Source of the DNA: Anthoceros angustus
Lineage: Eukaryota; Plantae; Anthocerotophyta
Length of the DNA stretch: 8,022 nucleotides
Reading direction: 5' to 3'
Assembly: GCA_010909165.1 (NCBI GenBank)
Contig: VJWM01000431.1
Location: 1 to 8,022, forward strand
Position 1 is the first letter of the stretch, and every line of letters starts with the position of its first letter. The notes below the pieces were generated by a model. It was not told the DNA's origin. It searched no databases and saw only the letters and a list, made by a program, of their open reading frames with translations. Below are positions 1-7,420 of this stretch, piece after piece. The position numbers were made by a program, and so were the translations under genes.

Positions 1-895
<895 letters not shown>

Positions 896-1562
896 TCAAC
901 CTTTCTGCTTCCTATCACCGACATGGACAATTTAAACACTATGTGCTTTTAAGAACGCACGACTGCACCATGTGTTTAATACGTTAGTAGGACATCCTGT
1001 GCTTGGCGTAACCAGTCATTTGTGGATTGATGACGATGTCCTCTCCGCAGCAACTTGTGGAATAGGGGGTTCTCTGGGACAGGTAATCGCGGAGTTCAGG
1101 TCGGACCCTACCCGGTAGAAGCATCAAAAGACTTGAGCAGCACGCCAGATATGCATAGCTGATCTGGAATGCTTATTAGCACCAGGCAATCTGGGCAGCT
1201 TGTCTTTAATTACAAAGGCTCCACACGTATAAAATCAGAAACAAAGTGTGCTATACCTATGAGAAACAAGTTGGCCTGGAGCTGACTGCAGCAGCTGACT
1301 AGAGGTTGCTGCCGCCACAAAAGCTGAAATGCAAAGCTCTAATATTAACTGCCGCACACATATTGTACAAAGAGCAAATTGAATCAATTTGGATGAAAGA
1401 ATGTCCGAGCGGGCAAGCAAACCTGCAGTGAACAAAAGGACGAGTGTTAGCTTCGACTTCGCATCACCCACAAGACCCATCCCAACAGGCTCACTACTAA
1501 CCGCTTGTTTTAATGACTCATAACATAGATTGATATTAGAAGACAGCAACCAGCCGCTCCAG

Positions 1563-3418
1563 CTACCCATCCATCGGAACGGTACCAAAAATACGATCCC
1601 ACAAGGGAGATGTAATCCCGAATCCATCAGTCTGCACTTTGAAATGGTGATTCAAGTGGTACCTCTGACAGCAGAAGAAACCATCTTCGATTAGTTAGCT
1701 GAGAGATAGGCCTGAACACTTCCGGTCAGATGGACAAAAACAAAGTCATCCTTTATGTACCTTCAGTTTTTGGAGTTACTGAACGGTGCTCCATGATGGT
1801 GGAAATAATGGGTAACATCTGTACACGACATATCCCAGCAGTCCTCCTCCAAACACTGATGGAACAGCAGTATATGGACACACTGCTTTCAAGATGCCCC
1901 AAAACTGGCATATTCAACAGATTCAGTATACACTAGAGTCATATAAGCTGCTGTGAGCTTTGATTCCACCACTTCCAGAGCATACAACCAGAAAAGAGCA
2001 AACATGCACGGCGGATTTGAAGGTGTGCCGTTTGTTCCATACCACAGCACAGAAGAGAGATGTAAATACTGGTGGAAATACAAGACGGTAGCCATCCATG
2101 GGGTGCTTATGATGTATGAAGATAGTGCAAAGTGTTTCCTGTCAGCAGGAACAAATGTGATACCGGTGTGGTGTTCATAGAAAGGTCAGACAAATCTGAT
2201 TAGGAGAGCCGAAGTGCCTTACCAATAAGTAGTCGTCTTGATATGGAAAAGGAACGTGTAAGCTGTACTCCAGAAACGACCACAGTAGAACGCCTAAAAA
2301 AATGTGCCTGGGAGAGTTGACAACGTGAGGCCTCTTTGGAGGCTAGACGTTGCGTGAATAGAACTACTGGCAACCAGACAATTGGTATTATCCACCACAC
2401 TGTCCGTGTGAAGTACTGCAACAATGAGGACATCATCATCATAAGTGATGTATGTGTGTCCAAAATGCGTTCCAAAACACATCACGGAAGTGAAAGGTTC
2501 CACAGTGAACCAGGTAACCCACCTCACAGAAATCACTAGCAAAGAATCGTGGACTCTCTTGGAAACAATCGGTTGATGCACTGATATAATCTTCACCAAG
2601 GTGCCCAACCTAGTGAAAAATATCTGGTGTTAGCCACTGGAACTATCTGTCAGTTGCAGCAAGCGGCTGGCCATCCCGTTCGAAAAGAACATATACCTGG
2701 AACACAAGAGGTTTGTTGAGATCGACCGTGAAGCTCTTGGGTTTTGATTTGCCATTTGGGACTGCATCATTTGGCCTGAAACTGCAAAAAAAAAACGATA
2801 CATGCGTTCAATCCTATGTACCAGTGGACGCAGCTGTGCCCTGGAGTCGTTCACTACCTGCTGCTGTGAACGACTCCACCAACATAGAACTGCTGCAACA
2901 TGTCGAAAGCAGCTTGGCTGTGAGAATGGGCATCCAGGGTGCCCACCTTCATCAACTCGCCCACATCTTTCCCTTGCAGACTTTCCAAGATCACCTATCA
3001 CAGACAGATGCGAATCCCAGATCACAGAGCGGAACCCAGCGAAACTAATGCAGTCATGAGCTACAACACATGCCGCTGCGCATAGCAATGCTCGTTTGTC
3101 CTCGGGCATTCCGCAGACCCAAAACCACCACCTCCCAGATCGACATTCTCAGACCACGTTAGATACCTCTGGACCGCCTGGATGGTTGTGAAGAAAATCT
3201 GTAACATCATAAGCCTTTCCGAACACCGGGATCCAGGCATCTTCCTCCGTCCGATGCCTGGCAACCCTCCATGGAAAACATTTTCAGCTGCGAACGCGAC
3301 TCAGCTGATGCTCCATTTTGCCCCACATCTGCGGCAATGTCCGAGACCACTGCCGCACCTGCAGCGCGCCGCAGGCATCGTCGGGGATGCGAGCCGCGAG
3401 GGGCCGGTTGCGGAGCAT
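1563..3418 (-). CDS. FAH1: Sphingolipid (ceramide) fatty-acid 2-hydroxylase with fused N-terminal cytochrome b5 domain (Scs7/FA2H architecture); about 11 apparent indels
   Basis: Exons: (start at 3418 or 3281)-3167, 2994-2858, 2781-2697, 2609-2523, 2415-2223, 2138-2043, 1904-1761, 1664-1563 (TAG), all with GT-AG introns of 76-172 nt. Recognisable FAH peptides: FTVDLNKPLVFQ|VGHLGEDY..HQPIVSKESPRFFASDFCE|YFTRTVWWIIPIVWLPVV..LEYSLHRFLFHIKTTTYW|.NTLHYL..HHKHPMDGYRLVFPP..|FWGILKAV..FGGGLLGYVVYDVTHYFHHHG..|RYHLNHHFKVQTDGFGITSPLWDRIFGTVP. All four His-box regions are present; the second is damaged. The start codon is uncertain, and the symbol names the family rather than proving orthology to FAH1 versus FAH2. 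Confidence 0.9.
2842..2878. repeat. Perfect 13-bp inverted repeat with an 11-nt loop, spanning the FAH exon 2/intron 2 splice donor
   Basis: TGGAGTCGTTCAC (2842-2854) and GTGAACGACTCCA (2866-2878) are exact reverse complements. On the - strand the loop reads AGCAGCAG|GTA. Confidence 0.9.
2858..3281 (-). other. Cytochrome b5 heme-binding domain (two exons) at the N-terminus of the FAH gene
   Basis: MFSME(E)VARHRTEEDAWIPVFGKAYDVTDFLHNHPGGPE|VILESLQGKDVGELMKVGTLDAHSHSQAAFDMLQQFYVG. HPGG is at 3184-3173 and the second His-ligand region HSHS at 2928-2917. The intron 3166-2995 is phase 0. One 2-nt gap at about 3266 (GAGG read where GAGGAG is expected). Confidence 0.9.
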
Positions 3419-3671
3419 GGCAGATCAAGCGCGAAGGCCCCCAGCTCTGCGGCAATCCTGACTGCTTTCAAACGGGCTCCAGTCTTCCTATAGGGTCGCC
3501 CGTTAGTAGTCAGGTTCCCCCGCCGTACCGGGAACCGGTAACCAGGCCGTCAGCCGGTTGGCGGGTTCTCATTCTCAAGGCTTCCCCGCGCGGCGTGGAC
3601 GCGCGTAATCGCGGAGGCGAGGGCGGCGTCGTCGTCTTCGGAGCTTGCGATTCGTTGACAAGGCGAGAGAG
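3419..3671. promoter_or_regulatory. Probable shared (bidirectional) promoter/5'-UTR region between FAH and RAR1
   Basis: About 250 nt of GC-rich sequence separates the divergent candidate starts of FAH (3418) and RAR1 (3672). Inferred from position only; no specific cis-element identified. Confidence 0.45.
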
Positions 3672-4979
3672 ATGTCTGTGACGCGGGTGAGATGCCAGCG
3701 GATAGGATGCGATGCCATGTTCTTGCCGGAGGAGAACGAGGACGATTCTGCTTGCATCTATCACCCCGGGGTATGTGCTGATGTGATCCCTTGGAGCAAG
3801 CTTCCATGGCAATTTGGAGTTGTAGATCTAAGAGGCCGCTAGGAAGTGAGTCCGGTTCGTCATGTTTTAGACGGATTTTAGCCTTGAACGGGACCAGCAG
3901 CAACAGTGCAAAATTTCGGTTAATTGGACATGCTGCAAGGCTGACAGATTATGTCTGGTGCTTCTGGGATGGGATTTGCGGGCTGGATTTTTCCGCTGCT
4001 ATCTCTGCTACATAGCCGGTGAGTTTCAGTTTGGTTTGCATGTTCTTGCAATTTGAGGATAGTGATGTCTTGAGCGTCAGTCTGACAGCCGACTTGTAAC
4101 CTCTCAGCCCTTGTTTCATGACGGCGGGAAGGAATGGGCTTGCTGCAAACAGCGGAGCCACGATTTCAGTTTGTTCCTGGAGCTCCAGGGTAATGCTGGT
4201 CGCAGTCGGAGAAAATTAGGGCATTCAGTTGTTGTGCTCAGCTGAGTAGGTGCTTGCTTGAATTTTCCCTGTCCCGCCAAAAAAATGCTGAGGAGTTTTA
4301 GCTGCCTTTGCCTTGCAGGTGCAAAAAGGGGAAGCATACTACTGAAAAGCCTGTGTTAGCAACAAAGGCAAAACCCGCCCCCAAGCCAGTTGCAGCGCCA
4401 GTAAGCAAGGAGGCATGCTCTAGATGTAAACAGGGATTCTTCTGCGCAGATCATGGTGAGCCTCCTTTCAGCTTATGGCACCTTCCGTTGGATGCAAGAT
4501 AGCTAGCTGCTTGGATATTCCAATAGTGACTCGCATGTGTAAATGGTGTGCTGCAGGAACCCCTGCAAAACCTCTAGCAACGACAAACTCTTCTCGACTT
4601 TCAGCCAGTACTCCTGTGCAGGTTCCCACACCAGCAGCTGCCCCTCCCAAAATTCTGGACCTTGATGCCAAACAGCAGTGCAAACATCATGGCTGCGGTA
4701 GCACATTCACTGAAAGGGAGAATCATGACACTGCTTGTCACTACCATCCTGGTCCTCCAGTTTTCCACGATAGATCCAGAGGAGTAAGTGGTCGTCTCAC
4801 TCCACCTGCTCATGTACACTTTCGCGCTTATACGATTCTTGCAATGCTCACCTTGGCTGTGTTTGCTGGTCGTTGGCATGCTGTGATGTTCATGTCAAGG
4901 AGTTCGACGAGTTCATGGCTATTCCTCCCTGTGCAAAGGGTTGGCACTTGATGACCAGTTGTTTTCCCGCGCATCCTAA
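3672..4979 (+). CDS. RAR1: RAR1 CHORD-domain HSP90/SGT1 co-chaperone (5 exons, apparent frameshifts, damaged last acceptor)
   Basis: Exons 3672-3770, 4108-4189, 4319-4455, 4557-4783 and about 4873-4979. CHORD-I: CQRIGCDAMF..SACIYHPG|PLFHDGGKEWACCKQRSHDFSLFLEL(P)G|CKKGKH. Plant-type CCCH linker: CSRCKQGFFCADH. CHORD-II: CKHHGCGSTFTERENHDTACHYHPGPPVFHDRSRG|.ACCDVHVKEFDEFMAIPPCAKGWH. One C is missing at 4185-4186, judged from exon phase. The stop at 4979 assumes one more indel near 4948; uncorrected, the frame runs to 5091. Confidence 0.93.
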
Positions 4980-5319
4980 TTGTTTTCGCAAACGACATCG
5001 TTTTCAGCCAGCTGGCATGAATCTGCTTCTGAAAATGTCGTCCCGAACCAGTCGTCCAGTGCCGGTTCTGCCTGTCGGTGTTTTATTCTAGCAATTGTGC
5101 AGTGGGATCCAAATTGATCTTCGCAGAAACGACTTCGGAAGTTGAAACGTGTAGTGCAACCTTTGTGTTATTGGTTGGATAAATGTGTCCGTTCGTCCAT
5201 CGGTCGCGCCAACATGTGCCCTAGTCTCTGTCTGTCTTATCTACCCTCCTTCGCAACTGCATGTTTTTTTCGGAAGCACTCGTCTGCTGTGCTGTGACTA
5301 CCCCTCTGCTTGTGGCCAG

Positions 5320-5551: not shown

Positions 5552-6219
5552 ATGGCTTGCGCTCTGCAGCTGTTAGTGCTGCCGCCCGGCCGGTATCTGT
5601 CTGATCATGGCGGTGAGATCAAGTTGTTGTGCTTTTCTGTTCCGCATTCCGTCCGCCGTGTTTGAGAACTGGAATTCCCGACACCCAGCTGAAGAATCTG
5701 GATAGGGTCTTTTTAAATGGAGGAGTACATTGCAGGCTTGGATGCACGGGGAAACGTTCGTTGGACTCCATGCCGAGCTGGTGTCCGCAATCTGCGGGCT
5801 GCACTGCACTTCTGGGGCTTGCTCGAGAAACCCACTATAGAGAGAACCACCCCGGTCGTGAGTCGGAGTTCGATCTGCGGTAGGCTGTCTTGTCTTAAGT
5901 TAGAGCTTCTTGCCGCAATCTTGTGCCTATGCTCCTTATGCTGCGCATGTCTCGTTGCAGAAAGTCTCGCAAATGTCTCCTCCTTACCGAGTGATGCTTC
6001 ACAACGACAACTTCAACAAGAGGGAGTATGTCGTCCAAGTGCTGATGAAAGTTATACCAGGGATGACGGTTGACAATGCTGTAAACATCATGCAAGAGGC
6101 TCACGTGAATGGGCTGGCAGTGGTGATCATTTGTGGACAGGCTGATGCAGAGGAGCACTGTTTGCAGTTAAGGGAAATGGTCTTTACAGCTCTGTCGAAC
6201 CAGCCAATGGAGGTGCTAG
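5552..6219 (+). CDS. CLPS1: Chloroplast ATP-dependent Clp protease adaptor ClpS1 (3 exons, four apparent single-base deletions)
   Basis: Exons 5552-5612, 5736-5879 and 5961-6219. After a putative transit peptide: GLLEKPTIERTT(P)GRESEFDLR|KSRK(M)SPPYRVMLHNDNFNKREYVVQVLMKVIPGMTVDNAVNIMQEAHVNGLAVVIICGQADAEEHCLQLR(G)NGLYSSVEPANGG(C)*, nearly identical to plant ClpS1 as I recall it. Bases appear missing in C4 (5850-5853), A3 (5971-5973), G3 (6172-6174) and T (6214). Exon 1 is less certain than the rest. Confidence 0.93.
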
Positions 6220-6899
6220 TACCAGGCATCATGACGTCTTGTGATTCAATTTATAGCTGTCCCTCAGCAATGTATACTATTAAGCACAGACTCTGGAGGG
6301 CATGGTGGAGCTTTCACCACCACATGACGCGACTCACCAAACTACGCGGTACACATTGAACTGCATGTATATACGTAAGTGCCAACCCTTACTGTACTCT
6401 ACAATTTTAGGTCTACACGCAGTGTGTCGTATGCAAACCCTGCACACTCTGCTTTGCAAGGCTACAAGCTGGGACCGGCGAACGACTTCCTTCTGTCTGC
6501 TCTATCTGCCATTTTGTTGCACGGCTTTGAGCAAGACAAGTATTCTGTAGAAAATGCGTCCAACAAGCTGCTGAGCCCCTAAAGCAGGGTGGCATTGCAG
6601 TCCATGACAAACTTTTGGACGGGTAGACGGTAAAATGTGGCGGCAGTCAGTTGTAGAGTTGGGTTATTGTATAGCTTTTCCTGACTGAGTTCATACGTAT
6701 CTCTGAGTACCTCGTACTTCCTACATGGAAAGGTTGGGAACAACCACCGTGCTTATGTCTGCAGTATTTGGTTGTTTCTCTGGTGCAATGCACGCAGCGC
6801 AGCGATATTTTTAGCAATGTCTTAGAACTTTTGTACACTGCGATCTTATGTTAGTGCAAACCGATATTAGGCACTGATCAAACGGCCATAGGAGTCTTG

Positions 6900-7080: not shown

Positions 7081-7252
7081 TACAGTCTCTTTTGACCATT
7101 CCAGTCATATTTTTTTATATTTTTTGTAGTTTAGTCTTTTAGTGGTTGATAGTGTCCGATACTTTCTGTGGAGGACAATGTCTATGTCTCGGACCAAGAA
7201 CATTTGTCTGTCGGACAGCAAAAGTGTAAACAGAGGCACAGCCAGCCCATGC

Positions 7253-7420
7253 CACATTGCACGACCCGCCACTGTTCCGCATCGCACGACATGGCACTTT
7301 TCCACATCGCACGATCCAGCACTGGTTCACATCGCACGACCTTCTGCACCGTTTCACATCGCACGATCTTTGGCTGTGTTTCACATCGCACGATCTTGGG
7401 GCTGTACTTCACATCGCACG
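7253..7420. repeat. Tandem array of seven CACATCGCACG cores with variable 14-17 nt linkers
   Basis: Cores start at 7253 (CACATTGCACG), 7278 (CGCATCGCACG), 7303, 7328, 7355, 7382 and 7410 (exact). Periods are 25, 25, 25, 27, 27 and 28. Confidence 0.93.

Follow-up and report, generated by a model that had tools for sequence, protein, structure and literature searches.

The 8,022 nucleotides of Anthoceros angustus contig VJWM01000431.1 analysed here (the window; all coordinates are window positions) carry, on the minus strand, a fatty acid 2-hydroxylase (FAH) gene in which a cytochrome b5 domain precedes the hydroxylase. In all likelihood this nuclear gene, from a land plant of bryophyte grade, is real and expressed and encodes a self-sufficient FAH of the Scs7/FA2H type that acts on sphingolipid fatty acids. 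The architecture is known from Scs7 and FA2H; the hornwort member is new. The gene was read by three-frame translation and by inspection of exon boundaries, and it has eight coding exons and a ninth, untranslated exon (Table 1). Two b5 exons and a linker stand ahead of the FTVDL motif within one open reading frame (ORF), unlike the arrangement in the b5-less FAH1/FAH2 family.

A first-pass annotation of the same DNA, made from the letters alone, had called the two parts a fusion. Part of the stretch is contained in six public runs, four of which (three studies, three organisms) were compared with it over positions 1450-3500, using Logan assemblies with one contig per run (X1-X4). In each of the four, a single contig of 1479-3742 nt spans positions 3473 to 1499 across all eight exons, and all seven coding junctions are spliced at the predicted sites. 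Separate mRNAs for b5 and FAH, which would speak against a fusion, were looked for; the transcripts instead join both in single molecules, crossing every junction, and the fusion call stands. The contigs are taken as transcripts because they are intron-less, with skips bounded by GT..AG, and so can hardly derive from DNA. With the transcript-supported gaps taken into account, the reading frame runs from b5 into FAH without a stop codon, and exon lengths plus transcript gap letters give multiples of three throughout: 252 (or 115+2) for the coding part of exon 1, 137+3+85 for exons 2 and 3 together, 87+6 for exon 4, 194+4 for exon 5, 97+8 for exon 6, 144-1+4 for exon 7 and 102 for exon 8. Thus b5 and FAH form one mRNA, not two genes. 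The contig of organism A (X1) is near-identical to the window. Those of organisms B and C diverge from it by several per cent and are fused nonetheless, which shows that related organisms conserve the fused transcript.

Domain and similarity searches were run with single exons or database proteins as queries. The segment 3167-3283 (-) of exon 1 matches positions 5-36 of the 74 positions of the Pfam profile Cyt-b5 (PF00173; E=1.1e-9), including HPGG, and exon 2 (2858-2994, -) matches positions 39-73 of the same profile (E=0.043), including the HSHS motif of the second ligand. Exons 1 and 2 are therefore complementary halves of a single Cyt-b5 domain; profile coverage runs from 5 to 73 of 74 and both axial histidine ligand motifs are present. 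The complete b5 fold with HPGG that had been claimed for two exons is borne out by these halves, and the peptides quoted for it can be read directly from the sequence. At the other end of the gene, the segment 1566-1664 (-) covers the final 28 positions of the FA_hydroxylase profile (PF04116; E=3.2e-6); being a fragment, it falls below the whole-domain cut-off. His boxes 1, 3 and 4 are readable in the window, and box 2, deleted in the assembly, is intact in all transcripts.

A second gene of this kind was found in a moss. The Ceratodon purpureus protein P0140 (KAG0604244.1, 357 aa) contains both Cyt-b5 (PF00173, E=3.9e-17) and FA_hydroxylase (PF04116, E=1.9e-16) in hmmscan; the moss entries KAG0604244.1 and KAG0560187.1 (P0140 and P0144) correspond to UniProt A0A8T0GNL8 and are automatically named 'Fatty acid 2-hydroxylase'. 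Its b5 region is 65% identical to exon 1 of the window over 34 aa (E=1e-11) and 43% identical to exon 2 over 42 aa (E=1e-8), and across both domains the protein is colinear with yeast Scs7 (E=8e-65). When mapped on its genomic locus, P0140 is encoded by eight exons, and all seven intron positions agree with those of the window gene. The common boundaries follow HPGGPE, PLVFQ, DF(C/L)E, YW and (K/N)LK; one more lies seven residues past the (V/I)G that ends the b5 domain, and another precedes the exon that starts (F/L)(W/Y)G. As architecture and introns are held in common, and two of these introns lie within the b5/linker part, the comparison argues that mosses and hornworts descend from an ancestor that already had one fused b5-FAH gene.

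The hydroxylase core was compared across relatives of the hornwort, a single moss and a single lycophyte, seed plants and probable ferns. A metagenome scan with the stop-free stretch around exon 6 returned a conifer-like FAH cDNA (L001, whose ORF is P0002) and a b5-less FAH gene (L002/L003). The 120 best matches of a word search with P0002 all contain PF04116 only, and the named ones are all from seed plants. In an exon-by-exon comparison the core pieces of the window share 75-76% identity with P0002 and with a group of 233-aa FAHs, which are probably from ferns and stand beside the seed plants in the tree; identity to angiosperm FAH1 is 71-73%. The branching of database FAHs in the tree mirrors that of the plant species. 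Given its identity to seed-plant and probably fern FAHs, the core is an ordinary plant FAH, vertically inherited and not fungal. A search with P0015 gave b5-less matches, including a lycophyte protein (Diphasiastrum complanatum P0133, 243 aa), with moss P0140 as the lone exception. Seed-plant FAHs begin about five residues ahead of FTVDL(N/K)KPLVFQ, a motif that forms the 3' end of exon 3 in the window gene.

Two b5-less genes are of particular interest. L002 and L003 are contigs from JGI metagenome data, 154 and 198 kb long, and come from a plant of low GC content (37-40%). The FAH gene at L002 4932-7000 has the intron positions of exons 3-8 in common with the window gene, and no b5 exon of the HPGG type was found within 4.9 kb upstream of it. 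The closest known core, 86.5% identical to the window pieces, belongs to P0124 (230 aa; Logan SRR33208242, L004 128-820). Its mRNA has a complete 5' end, with an adapter remnant and an in-frame stop, and is without b5. At the nucleotide level, identity to P0124 is only 82-84% over the two conserved exon stretches that align. P0124 is therefore either a paralogue or the orthologue of a less closely related species in which b5 was lost. It may represent a second, b5-less hornwort FAH gene. Contig L004 also strings together a starch-synthase-like ORF and others, and is probably chimeric.

Searches directed at the b5 part were less informative. With only exon 2 (45 aa) as query, exhaustive HMMER searching yielded a single match, P0001, the query being too short to inform on distribution. 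P0001 is an exon-like 69-aa ORF (JGI sample 3300059835, contig of 1161 nt) with the motif HSHSEAAFDML, and constitutes a third variant of b5 exon 2, sharing 56% identity with the window version and 50% with that of the moss. A word search with the alignment of exon 2 and P0001 returned P0001 alone, and a metagenome scan with this alignment gave no matches. In the ESM Atlas, exon 8 and P0002 found only bacterial or short clusters, with nothing on plant distribution.

In land plants, the ancestral state was most likely the fused form. Animals, fungi and protists all have fused enzymes (PMC10002949), and retention of b5 from the eukaryotic ancestor consequently requires fewer events than a secondary fusion and is the more economical explanation. 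The first-pass idea of an ancestral architecture lost in seed plants gains from the moss fusion with its seven common introns and from the lycophyte and seed-plant matches listed, which are b5-less. Since P0124 and L002 are b5-less as well, loss of the b5 exons seems to have occurred more than once. One scenario, to which we give an even chance, places a self-sufficient eight-exon b5-FAH in the last common ancestor of land plants; hornworts and mosses would have kept it, and the b5 exons would have been lost once in the vascular-plant stem and separately in bryophyte-lineage copies of the P0124 type. In either line, loss of the b5 exons would have been accompanied by a new start codon in exon 3.

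Several points weigh against a functional fused enzyme of ancestral design. As assembled, the window copy cannot encode an enzyme, His box 2 being lost and the frame shifted more than ten times, and the neighbouring CHORD and ClpS exons are without obvious frameshift, so that any error is unevenly spread. The RNA nature of the Logan runs is itself the tool's guess. The choice of start codon among 3418, 3281 and 3272 is not fixed. The core of the fused moss protein is less similar to the window (68%) than are the b5-less FAHs of vascular plants, b5-less relatives occur in bryophyte-grade lineages too (P0124, L002), and the order of the b5 losses is a tentative one, drawn from few taxa. Heme binding, electron path, substrate and activity are likewise predictions.

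These b5-less bryophyte-lineage genes would also fit a secondary origin of the fusion, in which exon shuffling in an ancestor of bryophytes added a free plant cytochrome b5 to an FAH without b5. Exon 1 scores better against free b5 (2e-7) than against Scs7 (4e-4), as does the whole moss b5 domain (2e-13 against 3e-10). The sole match of exon 2 in the PDB, however, is the b5 domain of Scs7 (E=0.055), and the long inter-ligand loop of the moss b5 aligns to Scs7 with four gap positions and to free b5 with seven. Moreover, domain order and linker position are those of Scs7/FA2H, and the fused form is the one present in animals, fungi and protists (PMC10002949). On balance we consider a secondary fusion unlikely. 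The proposal that the b5 exons resemble Scs7 and FA2H more than free b5 is thus only partly supported: exon 2 and loop length agree with it, but exon 1 and the whole moss domain score better against free b5.

The frame breaks require a separate explanation. About a dozen small gaps disrupt the frame of the window copy, none of which is found in the transcripts, and the indel sites coincide exactly with the frame jumps of the three-frame translation. Relative to the transcript contigs, exon 1 lacks two letters at about 3265 and has two extra at 3364-3365, and exon 2 lacks three letters (one codon, in frame) at 2945. The FAH exons contain at least eight further frame-breaking gaps relative to every transcript contig: two in exon 4 (2558 and 2578, six letters in total), four missing letters in exon 5 (2252, 2255, 2296/2341), eight missing letters in exon 6 at 2114-2117, and in exon 7 one extra letter at 1820 and four missing near 1767-1771. 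The eight letters lost from exon 6 encode the HGCHH core of His box 2 (GCAACCA + A in X3) and are present in all four runs. In intron 5 one G is absent from the G run at the donor and one at the acceptor; all transcripts nonetheless splice there. The phase-2 intron 2 had been said to join b5 to the hydroxylase in frame without any correction. This holds for the exon 2/exon 3 junction itself, which is in frame and bounded by GT..AG, but not for the surroundings, as exons 1 and 2 and the FAH exons carry gaps.

Very probably these breaks are errors of the assembly consensus rather than decay. The same-species contig X1 differs from the window by 0-3 substitutions per exon, with none in four exons and the untranslated region, whereas indels amount to about 30 letters, of which 26 are aligned gap letters and four lie at the end of exon 7; it is this scarcity of substitutions beside so many indel letters that favours consensus error, together with the frameshifts in the AlkB-like neighbour and the lack of a G at both splice sites of intron 5. 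Nearly all indels are deletions in the window, several within short repeats or base runs. Alternatively, the window copy could be a recently duplicated, decaying pseudogene, the intact transcripts stemming from a functional paralogue elsewhere. More than ten frame-breaking indels, including an eight-letter loss in a catalytic His box, and the clean appearance of the nearby CHORD and ClpS exons would agree with this. We judge it very unlikely, however: the ratio of indels to the almost absent substitutions is typical of consensus error, the differences are mostly window deletions in repeats and base runs, and the AlkB-like neighbour is frameshifted likewise.

The two remaining explanations can be dealt with briefly. 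That an adjacent small b5 gene and a b5-less FAH were joined by read-through or by chimeric transcript assembly is barely conceivable, as identical in-frame GT..AG junctions occur in four independent assemblies from three organisms, neither a stop codon nor a start context lies between the parts, and the exon plan recurs in the annotated moss gene, even though Logan contigs can be chimeric (e.g. L004 with its several ORFs). Horizontal acquisition of the fused gene from a fungus, suggested by the Scs7 architecture, is of minimal probability given a core 75-76% identical to plant FAHs, an FAH tree that tracks the plant species tree, and intron positions common with the b5-less plant gene of L002 and with the moss gene.

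According to the model of a self-sufficient enzyme, the protein would have three parts: an N-terminal b5 heme domain encoded by exons 1-2, a short linker from exon 3 and, from exons 3-8, a di-iron membrane hydroxylase with four His boxes. An endoplasmic reticulum reductase (NADH-cytochrome b5 reductase or NADPH-P450 reductase) would reduce the b5 heme, presumably held by the histidine of HPGG and the second histidine of HSHS. The fused b5 would then pass electrons in cis to the di-iron centre, which would use O2 for C-2 hydroxylation of the N-acyl chain of ceramide. The transcript has its first AUG at 3418, with alternative starts at 3281 and 3272; this first AUG is in frame with b5 only after the two transcript-supported corrections in exon 1 (3364-3365 and about 3265). 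In the transcript-corrected frame the predicted protein has 373 aa from AUG 3418 and 328 aa from AUG 3281. Beyond 1499, the contigs X1, X3 and X4 end in 255 letters that match positions 1390-1419 exactly, which places exon 9.

Table 1. Exons and introns of the b5-FAH gene in the window, with the evidence for their boundaries where given.
Feature	Position	Strand	Content	Basis
Exon 1	3167-3473	-	5' untranslated region, start codon, N-terminal half of Cyt-b5; HPGG at 3173-3184	contig pieces 3165-3473 in X1-X3; Pfam Cyt-b5 E=1.1e-9
Intron 1	2995-3166	-	GT..AG, phase 0, directly behind HPGGPE	joint 2992->3165 (cut +2) in X1, X2; 2991->3164 in X3, X4
Exon 2	2858-2994	-	C-terminal half of b5, second heme ligand (AHSHS)	
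Intron 2	2782-2857	-	GT..AG, phase 2; separates b5 exons from hydroxylase	joint 2781->2858 in 4/4 runs
Exon 3	2697-2781	-	linker and conserved FTVDLNKPLVFQ motif	
Exon 4	2523-2609	-	VGHLGEDY..VHQPIVSK..SPRFFASDFCE	
Exon 5	2222-2415	-	membrane helices 1 and 2, His box 1 (HRFLFH)	
Intron 5	2140-2221	-	neither GT nor AG as assembled	
Exon 6	2043-2139	-	His box 2	
Exon 7	1761-1904	-	His box 3 (HYFHHH)	
Exon 8	1502-1664	-	His box 4 (HLNHH), C-terminus, stop codon 1563-1565, start of 3' untranslated region	contig pieces 1499-1666; Pfam FA_hydroxylase positions 105-132, E=3.2e-6
3' untranslated region intron	1423-1501	-	GT..AG	
Exon 9	1165-1422	-	3' untranslated region only, about 255 nt	

The gene has three recognisable neighbours. 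A RAR1-like gene with CHORD domains lies at 3609-5090 (+), with Pfam CHORD matches of E=3e-6 to 2e-11 in three exon stretches. Because its first coding exon begins some 200 bp away from the start of the FAH transcript (3473) and is on the opposite strand, the two genes probably share a bidirectional promoter. An exon of ClpS, the Clp protease adaptor, at 5910-6356 (+; Pfam E=2.7e-17) shows no visible frameshift. Downstream of FAH, an AlkB-like 2OG-Fe(II) oxygenase gene occupies 1-895 (-), with a match to PF13532 (E=1e-4) on one piece; the assembled sequence shifts frame at least twice, including once within a C run at about 38-45, and the gene serves as an in-window control for assembly noise. 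A tandem array at 7252-7420 consists of five to six copies of units of about 25-28 nt with 74-90% matches and the core CACATCGCACGA.

Searches of the protein databases returned no hornwort protein of the b5-FAH kind. Small assembly gaps such as those described here make the gene unreadable to gene finders, which calls for caution and may explain this result. In the literature we found no paper describing a b5-fused FAH in bryophytes or discussing the Ceratodon purpureus entry, and fused FAH is not mentioned in reviews of land-plant sphingolipids or in the Marchantia Cytb5-HBD paper. A 2023 review states that plant FAHs are without the b5 domain that animals, fungi and protists have (PMC10002949). 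The window gene and its moss orthologue show that this is true of the sampled vascular plants but does not extend to all land plants, and loss of b5 would be dated after the split of bryophytes and vascular plants. According to the current model, free CB5 bridges FAH and Bax inhibitor-1 (BI-1) (PMC9539407). If the fusion is ancestral, the dependence of FAH on free b5 and the BI-1/CB5/FAH link to cell death would be a derived state, and hornworts may carry both forms side by side as a natural experiment. The fused gene thus offers a system for testing whether fused and free b5 are interchangeable, and what becomes of the BI-1 link where b5 is fused.

Among known systems, yeast Scs7p (PDB 4ZR0) and animal FA2H resemble the window gene in domain order and in the length of the inter-ligand loop and, presumably, in the electron path. 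Scs7p shares far fewer identities with the moss orthologue than the 75% found with plant FAHs, the hornwort core being typical of plant FAHs. The vascular-plant FAHs, Arabidopsis FAH1/FAH2 and others (e.g. P0004, P0079 and the lycophyte P0133), are like the window gene in their core (71-76% identity), the FTVDLNKPLVFQ/VGHLG start and the His boxes, but have no b5 domain and start about five residues before FTVDL. As the first-pass annotation had stated, Arabidopsis FAH1/FAH2 rely instead on free CB5, which also binds BI-1 (PMC10002949, PMC9539407). P0124 has the closest core and yet is without b5. The b5-FAH of Ceratodon purpureus has the same pair of domains, all seven introns and both heme ligands conserved, although its core is only 68% identical and its N-terminal leader and linker differ.

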